This document shows positions 48,636 to 62,521 of a stretch of 64,000 nt of DNA, piece after piece (positions within the stretch are counted from its first letter, which is position 1; every line of letters starts with the position of its first letter). The stretch lies in NCBI GenBank assembly GCA_002269645.1, contig NIVC01002260.1, positions 62,001-126,000 on the forward strand, written 5' to 3'. The notes beneath the pieces are model-generated. The model was not told the origin of the DNA. It was given only the letters and a program-made list of their open reading frames with translations, and made no database searches. A program made the position numbers and the translations under genes. The DNA is from Macrostomum lignano (lineage: Eukaryota).

Positions 48636-51600
48636 ATGCGTCTGACGGTGCTGCTTCTGCTCTCCGTTGTGGTGCTTCTGGCTCTCACTAGCGATGTTAG
48701 CGACGCCCGAAGATCGAAGCCGTGAGTATAGACCGAATTAGCTTTGCCAGTTACACTACTTAAAGCAGGCTAGTGTCTCAACTTGCTTGGATCAAGTTTG
48801 CTCATGTCGGCTTTCGCGAATAAATTTTCAGTCGCTGGGCCAGACGATGTTTTCGAAAGCTCGGAAAGACGGTGAAGCGTCTGAAAAAGCTGGCGAAGAT
48901 CAGGAAGATCCGCGCTAGGAGGGCCAAAAGGTCCTGGGCAAAGCGCATGGTCGCATGTGAGTGCAGTCCCTAATGTATCTGTGCAGTGCATTGTCTATGG
49001 AACAAACTGTAACAAGCGAATGATTCCCGGCTCGATGCTCGACTTTCAGCCATCAAAAAGTGCGGTCGGAGGCGCTGCGGGAGGCGGCAGCGATGCGTCG
49101 TTCGGCTATCCAGGAGGAAGATTGGCCGAATCTCCCGCCGAATCGCCCGGTTACGACGCCGCTACCGCAAGAAGAAGGCCAAGATCAATCGAAAGTTTCG
49201 AGCTGCCATTCGCCGCAGCTTGAAACGAGTGAAAACGGCGGCCGGTCGCAAAGCGCTCTCCAGCAAAAAGTCCAAGGCCAGAAAGGTTGTCAACAAGAGG
49301 AAGAAAAAGCTTCGCAGGCGAACTAGAAAACGACTGGTATCCCTGAAGCGGAAATTGCGCCGGGCTCGACGAGGGTCGAAGAGGTGCGTGTCCAGGAGAC
49401 GCCGCAGCTCGCGAAGGAGACGTGGTGAGTATTCACTTTGTCGGCTGTATGAAAATACGGTGCAGTCTATGTGGCCCAATTCATAAAAAACATCGCTTTT
49501 ACTTCCGATCCTACAGGCGTGCGGTGCGGCCGAAGACGCTGCAGCATTCGTCAGCGATGCGTCGCCCGACGATCCAGAAGACGAATCCGACGAATCCGCC
49601 GCCGAATCTCCAAGCTGGGACGATCGTATCGCAAGAAGCGGGCTAAAATTAGCCGCAAGTTGCGCGCCGCCATTCGCCGCAGCTCTCGACGCGTCAAATC
49701 GCTGGCCGCATGCCAAAGGCTCTCCAAGAAGCGATCCAAGATCAGAAGGGCAGCCAATAAGCGAGTAAAGAAAGTTCGCAGGCGTTTTAGAAAGCGACTG
49801 GTATCCTTGAGACGCCGACTGAGAAGAGCACGAAGAGGATCAAGACGTTGCGTGTCTCGAAGGAGAAGACGCGGTAAGCCATGGAATCTTTTTCGAGTAA
49901 TAGACTAAAGTCACACACAGACACACATATATATATTTGCTCCTAAAGGTGTTCAATGTGGCCGAAGACGCTGCGGAAGACGTCAGCGATGCATTTCCCG
50001 ACGATCGAGCAGAAGAATCCGCCGAATCCGAAACCGAATCTCCAAGGTAAGACGATCCTATCGAAAGAGACAGGCCAAAATCAGCCGAAAATTCCGCGCC
50101 GCCATTCGCCGGTATTCGCGATCGGTAAAGTCAGCAGCAGCACGTCAAAAACAAGCCAAAAAGAGGGCTAAGGCCAGAAAAATTGTCCGCAAGCGAACTA
50201 GAAAGCTTCGAAATCAAACTAAAAGAAGACTGCGATCTCTGAAGCGCAAATTGAGTAGAGCTCGGCGACAATCAAGAAGGTGCGTTTCACGAAGACTAAT
50301 TAGATCCAGAAAAAGACGCTCCTTGAAACGCCGTGCCAACCAAAGAAGACGCTCAGCGAGAAGACGTGCCAACCGAAAGAGACGTGGCAGCAAGAGACGA
50401 TCGAGGAGAAGCCGAAGACGTGCCAACCGAAAGAGACGTGGCAGCAAGAGACGATCGAGGAGAAGCCGAAGACGTGCCAACCGAAAGAGACGTGGCAGCA
50501 AGAGACGATCGAGGAGAAGCCGAAGACGCGCCAACCGAAAGAGACGTGGCAGCAAGAGACGATCTAGAAGAAGCCGAAGACGTGCGAACCGAAAGAGACG
50601 TGGCAGCAAGAGACGATCTAGGAGAAGCCGAAGACGTGCCACCCGAAGAAGTCGAAGAGCGAGAAGACGCGCCAACCGAAAGAGACGTGGCAGCAAGAGA
50701 CGATCGAGGAGAAGCCGAAGACGTGCCACCCGAAGAAGTCGAAGAGCGAGAAGACGCGCCAACCGAAAGAGACGTGGCAGCAAGAGACGATCTAGGAGAA
50801 GCCGAAGACGTGCCACCCGAAGAAGTCGAAGAGCGAGAAGACGCGCCAACCGAAAGAGACGTGGCAGCAAGAGACGATCTAGGAGAAGCCGAAGACGTGC
50901 CACCCGAAGAAGTCGAAGAGCGAGAAGACGCGCCAACCGAAAGAGACGTGGCAGCAAGAGACGATCGAGGAGAAGCCGAAGACGTGCCACCCGAAGAAGT
51001 CGAAGAGCGAGAAGACGCGCCAACCGAAAGAGACGTGGCAGCAAGAGGCGACCTAGAAGAAGAAGACGTGCGACCCGAAGAAGTCGAAGAGCGAGAAGAC
51101 GCGCCAACCGAAAGAGACGTGGCAGTAGGAGACGATCTAGAAGAAGCAGAAAACGTGCCACTCGAAGAAGTCGAAGAGCGAGAAGACGCGCCAACCGAAA
51201 GAGACGTGGCAGCAAGAGACGATTAAGGAGAAGCCGAAGACGTGCCAACCGAAAGAGACGTGGCAGCAAGAGACGATCTAGGAGAAGCCGAAGACGTGCC
51301 ACCCGAAGAAGTCGAAGAGCGAGAAGACGCGCCAACCGAAAGAGACGTGGCAGCAAGAGACGATCGAGGAGAAGCCGAAGACGTGCCACCCGAAGAAGTC
51401 GAAGAGCGAGAAGACGCGCCAACCGAAAGAGACGTGGCAGCAAGAGGCGACCTAGAAGAAGAAGACGTGCGACCCGAAGAAGTCGAAGAGCGAGAAGACG
51501 CGCCAACCGAAAGAGACGTGGCAGCAAGAGACGATCTAGGAGAAGCCGAAGACGTGCCACCCGAAGAAGTCGAAGAGCGAGAAGACGCGCCAACCGAAAG

Positions 51601-60600: not shown

Positions 60601-62521
60601 TAATGTCGTGAGATCATTGAAGAAACGGCTAAGAAAGTTCAAGCGGAGACCAAGAAGCTTCAGAAGACGCTACACACGCCGAGCCATCTGCGTTGCAGTA
60701 AATCCATGCCGGAGAAAGCGTTGTAGTCGAGGGTTTATCTGCCGGGTGCGAAAGATCAAAGCAAAAAGTGGCCGAACCAGATCTGTCGCTCGATGCGAGA
60801 AGAAAGCCAGTAAGTACTCGTACTTTTTAATAACTTTAAATTTTCTGTCAAAAGTCATGGATTTTTTGCAACTTTCTCAGTCTATATACAGACCTACAAA
60901 GAGTAAAGCATCAAATTTCAGACAAGTGCAGCAAGGTGAACTGTTCCAAGGGCAAGCGATGCATCGTCAGGCGGGTGTCGACTCGTACTTTCAAAGGTTT
61001 CCGCTGGTTTGCCAGGGCAAACCGTAGACGCTTCAGGCGCAAGGCTCGACGACTTTTCAAACGTCTCCGCAACAAGAGGCGAAGATTCGCGAGGCGAGTC
61101 GTAAAGAAGTACAAAAAGGTGCGCAAGTCTCTCAGGAAGCGTCTCCGCGGTCGGAAGCTCGCTAGGCGTGTCAAAGCCGTAAAACGCTCTGTGAGGCGAA
61201 AACTGCGAAGATTCCGAAACCGATCGCGGAGGTCTTTCCGTCGACGGAGAGCCGCGCTGAAACGGCGATTTAGAAGCGCTGTGAGGCGTTTCTCCGCACG
61301 ATACTTGAGCTACCGGAGGCGCTACAAGACCCGTGCAATTTGTGTCAAGAGGCTAAAAAGTGAGTTGAAAGCATTATATTTGATTAGATAGGATTTTTAT
61401 TTTAATGTTTGCTGAAATTGCAGCAAGTATATCTAGATACGATATGTAATACGATCGATGATACACATGATAAAGTGCTTCCAAATAAACGACATGTTTG
61501 TTGTAAATATTTCAGTAATATTTTTATTACTATTGTATTCATTTCAGACCCTTGCAGCAAGAAACGCTGTCGAAAAGGCACAAGGTGCGTTGTTAGAAGA
61601 AAGCAGTCCAGGCTTCAGAAGAAATTCATCAGAATCGCAAAACGCCAAATCAAGAAGTTCGTATCAGTCCGGCGTCGGTTGAGTAAGCTGCGTCGTCGCA
61701 AGCGCAAAGTCGCCGTTCGCAAACTGACTCGCAAACTCAAACGGAAGCTGAGAAAGCTGCACAGACTATACAGAAGACGCGGCGCTTTCCAACGAAGCCG
61801 AAAGCTCGTGGCTCGCTGCTCAAGCGTGAGGAGAAGAACCCGTCGCATTTCCTGGAGAAGGAGAGTCTATCGCTTTTCAAGGAGGGTTCGTCGACGCGTC
61901 TCAAAGAGAGCCCGCCGTGTATCTCGGAATGTTCGACGTTTTTGGGGTAAATCTCGTCGCTTTTCTAGGAGAGTTCGTCGACGCGTCTCAGGGAGAGTTC
62001 GTCGACGCGTCTCAGGGAGAGTTCGTCGTGCCTCAAAGAAAGTCCGTCGCTTCTGGGGTAAAGCTCGTCGCTTTTCAAGGAGAGTTCGTCGACGCGTCTC
62101 AAGGAGAGCTCGCCGTGTATCTCGGAAGGTTCGACGTTTTTGGGGTAAATCTCGTCGCTTTTCAAGGAGAGTTCGTCGACGCGTCTCAGGGAGAGTTCGT
62201 CGTGCCTCAAAGAAAGTCCGTCGCTTCTGGGGTAAATCTCGTCGCTTTTCAAGGAGACTTCGTCGACGCGTCTCAAGGAGAGCTCGCCGTGTATCTCGGA
62301 AGGTTCGACGTTTTTGGGGTAAATCTCGTCGCTTTTCAAGGAGACTTCGTCGACGCGTCTCAAGGAGAGTTCGTCGCCGCGTCTCAAGGAGAGTTCGTCG
62401 ACGCGTCTCAAGGAGAGTTCGTCGACGCGTCTCAAGGAGAGTTCGTCGCCGCGTCTCAAGGAGAGTTCGTCGGCGCGTCTCAAGAAGGTCAAGAAAGAGC
62501 GGCAGATCCAGGAGGCGATGA
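48636..62521 (+). CDS. Giant secreted hyper-Arg/Lys-rich protein (~4085 aa) with follistatin-N-like Cys modules and two SUEL lectin domains
   Basis: 16 coding exons: 48636-48721, 48832-48956, 49050-49424, 49517-49873, 49949-56410, 56484-56708, 56841-57296, 57390-57497, 57583-57699, 57858-58064, 58228-58677, 58760-58855, 58940-59815, 59904-60809, 60922-61359, 61548-62521. All introns GT-AG with phases closing, 12258 nt. Signal peptide MRLTVLLLLSVVVLLALTSDVSDA; stop TGA 62519-21. Confidence 0.85.
50350..56270 (+). repeat. Coding tandem repeat: 54/84/87-bp units (18/28/29 aa; RRANRKRRGSKRRSRRSR[RRATRRSRRAR])
   Basis: ~5.9 kb with no frameshift or stop in the Arg frame; all unit lengths are multiples of 3. 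Confidence 0.95.
56861..57118 (+). other. SUEL-type (Gal_Lectin/rhamnose-binding) lectin domain 1 of the Arg-rich protein
   Basis: CEHSSISIRCPKGYKIDILSGFYGRTNKTVC...C...[34 protein letters not shown]: 8 Cys, YGR and FGDPCxGTxKYL signatures. Confidence 0.92.
58248..58505 (+). other. SUEL-type lectin domain 2 of the Arg-rich protein
   Basis: CEHGSSSLSCTSGSTIDVLSAFYGRTSGSVC...C...[34 protein letters not shown]. Confidence 0.92.
61860..62490 (+). repeat. C-terminal coding repeat: 29-aa RRVRRRVSRRARRVSRKVRRFWGKSRRFS units and 8-aa RRVRRRVS units
   Basis: Visible in last exon, in frame. Confidence 0.9.

Follow-up and report, generated by a model that had tools for sequence, protein, structure and literature searches.

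The 64,000-nucleotide stretch of Macrostomum lignano DNA analyzed here (contig NIVC01002260.1, positions 62,001 to 126,000; we call this whole stretch the window) carries a real, intact gene for a giant polycationic protein with two intact SUEL lectin domains. The gene is transcribed, spliced in frame and translated, and its product is deposited outside the animal on the substratum; identity with published peptides, together with homologues that were found in M. lignano only, indicates that it is the source gene of a transcript whose peptides were detected in M. lignano footprints, or an allele or homeologue of that gene, in M. lignano or a very close relative. The protein is a strong candidate for a glue or mucus component, and we consider it probable, with considerable room for doubt, that this secreted polycationic lectin gives cohesion to, or condenses, the matrix of a secretion deposited outside the body.

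We rebuilt the gene model from the raw sequence and obtained 16 coding exons on the + strand (48636-62521), running from an ATG at 48636 to a TGA stop at 62519-62521; the introns are GT...AG without exception, exons 3-16 are all of phase 1-1, and the coding sequence of 12,258 nt encodes 4085 amino acids (aa) followed by the TGA. A preliminary description of this DNA had proposed a TATA box, 16 phase-consistent exons, a polyadenylation signal and a protein of ~4085 aa, all of which were borne out by this independent rebuild. The near-absence of Asp and Glu that it reported is equally evident, as the protein contains 14 acidic residues in total (8 Asp and 6 Glu), with two in the signal peptide and six at conserved SUEL positions (CEH, ID[IV]L, GDPC), and 12 retained in the mature protein. 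The overall composition is dominated by Arg (R 44.4%, S 11.1%, K 10.1%, A 9.1%, G 3.7%, H 0.3%, and 74 Cys), with a predicted mature mass of ~511 kDa and a net charge near +2,200. The signal peptide corresponds to a single hydrophobic, signal-like segment at the N-terminus, residues 3-21 (MRLTVLLLLSVVVLLALTSDVSDA, then RR), which is the sole hydrophobic stretch of the whole protein; its cleavage site was presumed from the -3/-1 rule (S, A). No other copies (paralogues) of the gene were found elsewhere in the window.

That the product is secreted, as the preliminary description had supposed, is supported by peptides identical to exons 7, 11 and 14 in trypsin digests of M. lignano footprints. 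In Dataset S2 of Wunderer et al., 2019 (PMC6410801), the sheet footprints_Trypsin_intact_1 holds a 4,920-nt M. lignano transcript with five peptides, annotated as 'Galactose binding lectin domain PF02140, score 143.8', 2xSUEL, with an isoelectric point (pI) of 12.48. Four of the five peptides match the window sequence exactly (exon 7 twice, IDILSGFYGR and one 17-residue peptide; exon 11, one of 15 residues; exon 14, GAGSFLWGR), and the fifth, CTSGSTIDVISAFYGR (cTSGSTIDVISAFYGR), differs from exon 11 at one isobaric I/L and in the preceding residue. Because the whole 4,085-aa protein can yield only 23 tryptic peptides of at least 7 aa, five detected peptides represent a sizeable share; and since the five share a reading frame within a single transcript, intron removal from exon 7 through exon 14 keeps the frame, as modelled. 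Proteins of this kind are thus nearly invisible to tryptic proteomics and are also hard for short-read assembly, so similar components may be under-counted in other bioadhesives. We dropped a reading of the entry's '1639 aa / 199.74 kDa' as an open reading frame (ORF) equal to the last 1639 residues (199.80 kDa), since '#AAs' in Dataset S2 is transcript length / 3 and not ORF length, and the mass match is therefore no evidence for the exon 5/6 junction. A related footprint entry, an 11,590-nt transcript (3,863-residue frame translation, 457 kDa, pI 12.1, SUEL plus VWA/hemicentin-like annotation), was detected in both footprint replicates, and several basic VWA proteins (pI 11.1-11.3) occur in the same footprint sheet; the paper highlights Mlig-ap1 and ap2 only and does not discuss the 11,590-nt entry (PMC6410801). 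We found no publications on the window protein or its M. lignano relatives, and no Macrostomum transcripts annotated as SUEL or latrophilin in the seminal-fluid, positional RNA-seq and single-nucleus papers and their supplements.

The transcription signals, exons and domains of the gene are as follows, in window coordinates.

48414-48419, + strand: TATAAA box, ~30 nt upstream of a plausible transcription start, read directly from the sequence.
48487-48628, + strand: putative intron of the 5' untranslated region (GTAAGT...TTTCAG), containing a 35-bp x3 minisatellite.
48636-48721, + strand: exon 1, start codon and predicted signal peptide (MRLTVLLLLSVVVLLALTSDVSDA, then RRSK).
48832-48956, + strand: exon 2, basic linker of 42 aa with one unpaired-looking Cys.
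49050-49424, + strand: exon 3, N-terminal Cys-clamp module 1 (C-x4-C-x5-C, basic insert of 97 residues, fourth Cys).
49517-49873, + strand: exon 4, N-terminal module 2, sharing 69% identity with exon 3.
49949-56410, + strand: exon 5 (6,462 nt), comprising N-terminal module 3 followed by the Arg-rich tandem array and a degenerate tail; frame 0 alone is open throughout.
50368-56127, + strand: array core with 72 tandem units, each of 18/28/29 aa (54/84/87 nt), 58% Arg, with higher-order repeats.
56484-56708, + strand: exon 6, Cys knot opening the module around SUEL domain 1.
56841-57296, + strand: exon 7, SUEL lectin domain 1, basic helix and closing fourth Cys; exact footprint peptides.
56861-57121, + strand: SUEL lectin domain 1 (8 Cys, YGR, GDPC, KYL), matched by Pfam PF02140 and PDB 5H4S and 2ZX0.
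57390-57497, + strand: exon 8, short 4-Cys module, loop of 17 residues, conserved in the M. lignano homologues.
57583-57699, + strand: exon 9, short 4-Cys module, loop of 21 residues.
57858-58064, + strand: exon 10, Cys knot opening the module around SUEL domain 2.
58228-58677, + strand: exon 11, SUEL lectin domain 2, basic helix and closing Cys; footprint peptides.
58248-58505, + strand: SUEL lectin domain 2, the second stretch matched by Pfam PF02140.
58760-58855, + strand: exon 12, short 4-Cys module, loop of 14 residues.
58940-59815, + strand: exon 13, two long Cys-clamp modules with basic inserts of 128 and 129 residues; 35% identity to the M. lignano homologue over 417 aa.
59904-60809, + strand: exon 14, one long module (insert of 249 residues) and one short module; exact footprint peptide GAGSFLWGR.
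60922-61359, + strand: exon 15, one long module, predicted by structure modelling to be a disulfide-clamped antiparallel helical hairpin; aligns gap-free to the M. lignano homologue.
61548-62521, + strand: exon 16, last module, then a tandem tail of RRVRRRVS / RRFWGKSRRFS and the TGA stop.
62602-62607, + strand: AATAAA polyadenylation signal, 81 nt past the stop.

The preliminary count of ~14 Cys micro-domains resolves into exactly 14 C-x4-C-x5-C motifs, and the 74 Cys partition as 14x4 + 2x8 + 2. Each module consists of a C-x4-C-x5-C knot followed by a fourth Cys 14 to 249 residues later: loops of 14-21 residues characterize the short modules, found in exons 8, 9 and 12 and at the end of exon 14, the long ones carry a basic insert of ~77 to 250 residues, and two (exons 6+7 and 10+11) house a SUEL domain within the loop. 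We modelled the exon 15 module with AlphaFold2 (AF2), using the contiguous exon translation in an alignment with a single further sequence, its M. lignano counterpart, and obtained an antiparallel helical hairpin (strand 11-19, helix 21-73, helix 76-128, strand 134-142; mean predicted local distance difference test score, pLDDT, 91.3) whose two ends pair beside the Cys knot. Each long module is predicted to form such a hairpin, ~8 nm long and coated with Arg/Lys, with its base clamped by the C-x4-C-x5-C knot and the distant fourth Cys, and in two modules the clamp would enclose a SUEL domain instead. When the exon 15 model was compared with PDB structures in Foldseek, the matches were limited to generic helical hairpins (E >= 0.2), with no specific relative. 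We take the spacing 'NPC-x4-C-x2-G-x2-C' to resemble, and to do no more than resemble, the follistatin-N (FOLN) hairpin; a FOLN or EGF-like identity of the knots was rejected, with no Pfam match even at E up to 10 and the C-x-C pair missing.

Both SUEL domains proved to be intact, as had been claimed, with 8 Cys and the family motifs kept. Pfam, applied to the non-repeat parts at E up to 1, recovered SUEL and no other domain, with PF02140 (SUEL_Lectin) covering two full-length stretches (143.9 bits vs. a cut-off of 31.4, E 2e-42). SUEL domain 1 aligns end-to-end with SUL-I (5H4S, 9e-66) and CSL3 (2ZX0, 1.5e-34), and likewise with latrophilin RBL domains; residue-by-residue alignment with 5H4S and 2ZX0 shows all 8 Cys and the YGR, DPC and KYL motifs intact, and direct reading of SUEL domain 2 reveals an equal motif set. 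Despite the scarcity of acidic residues, the SUEL domains retain both the Glu that follows Cys1 and the Asn/Asp within NSVFGDPC, residues that we take to be ligand contacts as in the CSL3 structure. Known PF02140 lectins (SUL-I, CSL3, latrophilin RBL) are small proteins of 1-3 domains, or receptor ectodomains, of ordinary charge; the window domains are full-length members of the family, yet they are inserted in disulfide-clamped loops of a 4,085-aa polycation.

The preliminary description did not recognize the architecture; it is not confined to this locus and belongs to a family within M. lignano, comprising A0A1I8GDF5/A0A1I8JAD7 and the 11,590-nt transcript relative with its pI of 12.1. A word-indexed search with the lectin region returned ordinary SUEL lectins only, and the multi-domain Hydra and spider matches to that region were set aside as plain tandem SUEL proteins without basic linkers. 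Searching with the lectin-free spliced exons 12-16 returned a single protein, UniRef A0A1I8GDF5 from Macrostomum lignano (1223 aa; cluster mate A0A1I8JAD7, 2245 aa), both members being uncharacterised and named 'SUEL-type lectin domain-containing protein'. The pair is colinear with window exons 6-16 (38.7% identity over 1,576 aligned columns; by BLASTP, 42% over 306 aa and 35% over 417 aa). Of 60 window Cys, 57 are matched by a Cys in the homologue, and the alignment spans seven predicted splice junctions with a gap of at most 1 residue. Conservation extends into the basic 'linkers' (SKKRARKS[VA]FRR, AFKNRV..VARCI, YRWFAR, KRGAF..LVARCS), and since the exon 15 module aligns gap-free at 40% identity, the basic inserts appear to be constrained in both length and sequence. 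An exhaustive phmmer search with exon 14 against 1.84 billion representatives gave 0 matches, the M. lignano paralogue being either too diverged in exon 14 or lost to bias filters. Like the window protein, A0A1I8JAD7/A0A1I8GDF5 has the C-x4-C-x5-C...C modules, a SUEL domain inside a module and a very basic composition (33% R+K). It differs in having one SUEL domain, with a VWA domain in place of window exons 10-11 (SUEL 2), a Thr/Lys-rich 'NKASETKQKTKT' repeat within the equivalent of exon 14, and a C-terminus that is long, basic and Cys-rich ('CPxG') in place of the RRVRRRVS tail of the window gene; the paralogue model is incomplete at its N-terminus, and the comparison covers window exons 6-16.

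We then compared the protein with the polycations described from flatworm adhesive glands. The idea of a novel system found no support in that form, since giant secreted Lys/Arg-rich, lectin-bearing flatworm gland proteins with pI >14 have already been characterised (Mlig-ap1, ap3), and the window protein therefore founds no new category. Mlig-ap1 (5,407 aa; Wunderer et al., 2019; PMC6410801), the cohesive protein of the M. lignano adhesive, is likewise giant, secreted, footprint-resident and lectin-bearing, and tryptic mass spectrometry detects it poorly; Lys/Arg-rich repeats with pI >14 make up two thirds of its length, and electrostatic cohesion released by a polyanion was proposed as its function. 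However, its C-type lectin, vWD-C8-TIL and 17 EGF modules (tandem, calcium-binding) have no counterpart in the window protein by Pfam, none of its repeat peptides (SRKPRRKNRKSRKP, KNNKRRVRKARKNN, KSRKVN) occurs there, and its repeats are described as G/R/K-rich, unlike a protein with 44% R, 10% K and 3.7% G. The ap3 proteins (Mile-ap3a/b of Minona ileanae and the 3,700-aa Tmed-ap3 of Theama mediterranea) are stand-alone giant low-complexity polycations with a signal peptide, whose knock-down abolishes the dense core of the adhesive vesicles. They are of GRK/'GRKHS' low complexity (K > R, with much G and H) and have no reported folded domains, whereas the window protein is Arg-dominated, contains 'GRK' twice and 'GRKHS' not at all, and has 14 Cys modules and two SUEL domains. 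By these testable features (domains, repeat peptides and composition, as described for those proteins) it falls outside both the ap1 and ap3 families; what is new here is the Arg dominance, the previously undescribed Cys-clamped module, and SUEL in place of a C-type lectin.

How might such a protein work? The product would enter the secretory pathway, leave the gland and end on the substratum, acting as a multivalent cross-linker or condenser of the gland glycoprotein secretion. The Arg-rich rods and array would bind polyanions electrostatically (sulfated or carboxylated glycans, glycocalyx, negatively charged surfaces), and the SUEL domains would bind terminal galactoside- or rhamnose-type sugars, a candidate ligand being the Gal-beta(1-3)-GalNAc glycan that Mlig-ap2 bears. 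The outcome would be cohesion of an adhesive or mucous deposit that a competing polyanion could dissolve, by analogy with the logic proposed for Mlig-ap1 and ap3 and backed by experiment for Mlig-ap1. In the published model, positively charged KR regions are cohesive, attachment is blocked by heparin and release is blocked by cationic peptides; flatworm adhesion papers call the role of Lys/Arg-rich regions 'enigmatic'. Flatworm temporary bioadhesion is the best-understood attach-and-release glue, and the locus supplies the full genomic model of a second polycationic family, one that differs in structure and is present in footprints, together with defined predicted sugar-binding domains that can be related to the Mlig-ap2 glycan, and with predicted Cys-clamped cationic hairpin modules that are easier to express and study than pure low-complexity repeats. 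A bolder version, which we rate as rather unlikely, is that the window protein and its 3,863-residue relative constitute an overlooked third component class of the Macrostomum duo-gland adhesive, in which SUEL grips the Gal-beta(1-3)-GalNAc of Mlig-ap2 while the hairpins and array bind the anchor-cell glycocalyx and are then titrated by a polyanionic releasing factor. If true, this class would supply the missing molecular link for cohesion and rapid release, and extracellular proteins would gain a new domain type in the disulfide-clamped polycationic helical hairpin.

Several points weigh against assigning a cohesive or condensing role to the full-length protein. The published transcript is ~4.9 kb and starts at about the exon 5/6 boundary, and the signal peptide, N-terminal modules and array are joined to the lectin part, as far as the genomic sequence suggests, by ORF continuity, splice phase and shared module architecture only. 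Furin-type convertases could cut the protein in the secretory pathway, given its 411 R-x-[KR]-R motifs, and AF2 with one or two sequences tends to over-predict helices in Arg/Ala-rich sequence. The gene's 1,814 Arg codons are mostly AGA and CGA, and its GC content at third codon positions (GC3; 0.42 in the giant exon and 0.54 in the C-terminal exons) is unlike that of the neighbouring PRPF8 (GC3 0.87, Arg mostly CGC). The footprint digests also hold an apoB/vitellogenin-like top match, AHCY, MDH2 and ribosomal proteins (PMC6410801), so that with cellular and probably egg-derived contaminants in the sample, presence there is no proof of an adhesive role. Among the entries listed of the peanut agglutinin (PNA) pull-down and tail datasets of that paper, we saw none with PF02140; the gene was not picked up by the tail-specific screens that yielded ap1 and ap2; and a literature search for in situ or RNA interference data on it found none. 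As a separate observation, the Arg codon contrast with PRPF8 might be explained by tRNA-supply constraints or another expression regime.

Some of these points also fit a body-wide mucus or rhabdite-type secretion, in which epidermal gland granules would hold the polycation together with acidic mucopolysaccharide, and the protein would reach the footprints only as a slime trail. Rhabdites are classically acidophilic, that is, rich in basic protein, and footprints are whole-animal deposits with many non-adhesive proteins; the gene's absence from the tail-specific screen results points the same way, as does the mention, in the Minona paper, of M. lignano mucus proteins of ap1-like domain architecture. 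We regard this alternative as a possible but less favored one. It invokes the same physical mechanism as our preferred explanation, a polycation and lectin condensing glycans, and differs only in the gland.

We hold it unlikely that the protein is instead a reproductive secretion, either an egg glue of the cement or shell glands or a prostate (seminal fluid) protein. SUEL lectins were first discovered in eggs, the lipoprotein/vitellogenin-like top footprint match suggests egg material in the sample, and the fast evolution typical of reproductive proteins fits the 39% paralogue identity. Against this, the terms PF02140, lectin and LPHN2 were not found in the searched supplements of the seminal-fluid screen and positional RNA-seq, a weak argument, as those tables may carry no Pfam names.

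A role in defence appears slightly less likely still, whether as a lectin-targeted polycation that agglutinates or permeabilises microbes or deters predators, or as a polyprotein cut at dibasic sites into cationic peptides. The extreme cationic charge and the many R-x-[KR]-R motifs would suit such a role, among SUEL relatives with solved structures the nearest is SUL-I, a sea-urchin venom lectin, with the fish egg lectins CSL3 and CSL2 next, and there are analogies with eosinophil major basic protein and with rhamnose-binding lectins from the eggs and mucus of fish. Major basic protein, a cationic protein of lectin fold that is stored in granules, is 14 kDa in size and has an acidic pro-piece, whereas the window protein is without an acidic partner region and has a signal segment and extracellular-type Cys modules. 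Moreover, the acidic or neutral spacers and pro-regions of known antimicrobial polyprecursors are missing, the conserved Cys clamps and length-conserved helical inserts favor a large folded scaffold over a peptide factory, and the recovered tryptic peptides come from three distant exons of one product.

The cohesive reading draws in part on the array, and for exon 5 the question is whether this array is coding, or one more MINISATELLITE. The preliminary description had a ~2000-aa Arg/Lys repeat, and we indeed find a 1,920-aa core (58% Arg) of 72 units of 18, 28 or 29 aa inside the single 6.46-kb exon; splitting exon 5 at ANRK gives 74 segments, two of which are the non-repeat exon ends. The commonest unit, ANRKRRGSKRRSRRSRRRATRRSRRARRR, occurs 32 times, and 19 of its 29 residues are R or K. 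Suppose, however, that the annotation is partly artefact, the true gene being exons 6-16 (~1,600 aa) and the array a chance-open minisatellite or an assembly expansion. The window is rich in minisatellites (>30 arrays), long ORFs exist also in other frames of the array, the published transcript begins about where the array exon ends, and GC3 drops in the giant exon relative to the C-terminal exons. Yet most arrays in the window have periods that are not multiples of three, while the array units (54, 84 and 87 nt) all are, and the Arg frame alone is open over the entire exon, continuing from a genuine third N-terminal Cys module (120 aa, 63-69% identical to exons 3 and 4) through the array to a phase-1 donor fitting exon 6. 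Variants between units comprise 12 synonymous and 9 non-synonymous changes, with 11 of 21 at third positions and three of the non-synonymous ones being K/R swaps, a bias toward third positions and K/R swaps that counts against a chance-open repeat. Exons 6-16 alone would be left without start codon and signal peptide, the sole signal peptide lying upstream of the array, and an array of this sort is exactly where a short-read assembly should be interrupted, as was reported for ap1 and ap3. Taken together, we judge an artefact about as improbable as a defensive role and retain the coding array, which is predicted to be an extended polycationic tract; an AF2 single-sequence model of a 200-aa array piece, to which we give low weight, shows long helices broken at the Pro-containing unit (pLDDT 87.5; predicted template modelling score, pTM, 0.32).

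Protamines have a comparable Arg content but are small, nuclear and without signal peptides, and an identity as a protamine or sperm nuclear basic protein does not fit the 4,085-aa length, the signal-like N-terminus, the extracellular-type domains and the footprint detection.

Several further features were noted in the remainder of the window. Rfam and tRNA scans gave no matches, and an assembly gap of 202 N (9179-9380) lies within a 20/34/133-bp satellite block at 8466-9178. Between 13000 and 20700 there is an AT-rich (31-38% GC) large inverted-repeat element that looks like a foldback-type transposon; the unique parts of its arms (14510-15046 and 17899-18435) are 91% complementary, 18-bp and 23-bp satellite arrays are mirrored on both arms, and a 48-bp x33 array occupies the center (15675-17238). 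The PRPF8 (pre-mRNA-processing factor 8) gene lies at 22662-37072 on the + strand, with a core 93% identical to human and a 15-44-bp minisatellite array in almost every intron; a search with its N-terminus turned up no near-identical protein, and so no match at species level. Two very long minisatellites follow, one of 21 bp x65 (41245-42611) and one of 15 bp x115 (43788-45506; GC 63%, GC skew -0.64), and between them an ORF at 43196-43765 (+ strand) codes for a segment rich in Pro and Glu, which may belong to an unidentified gene as one of its exons.

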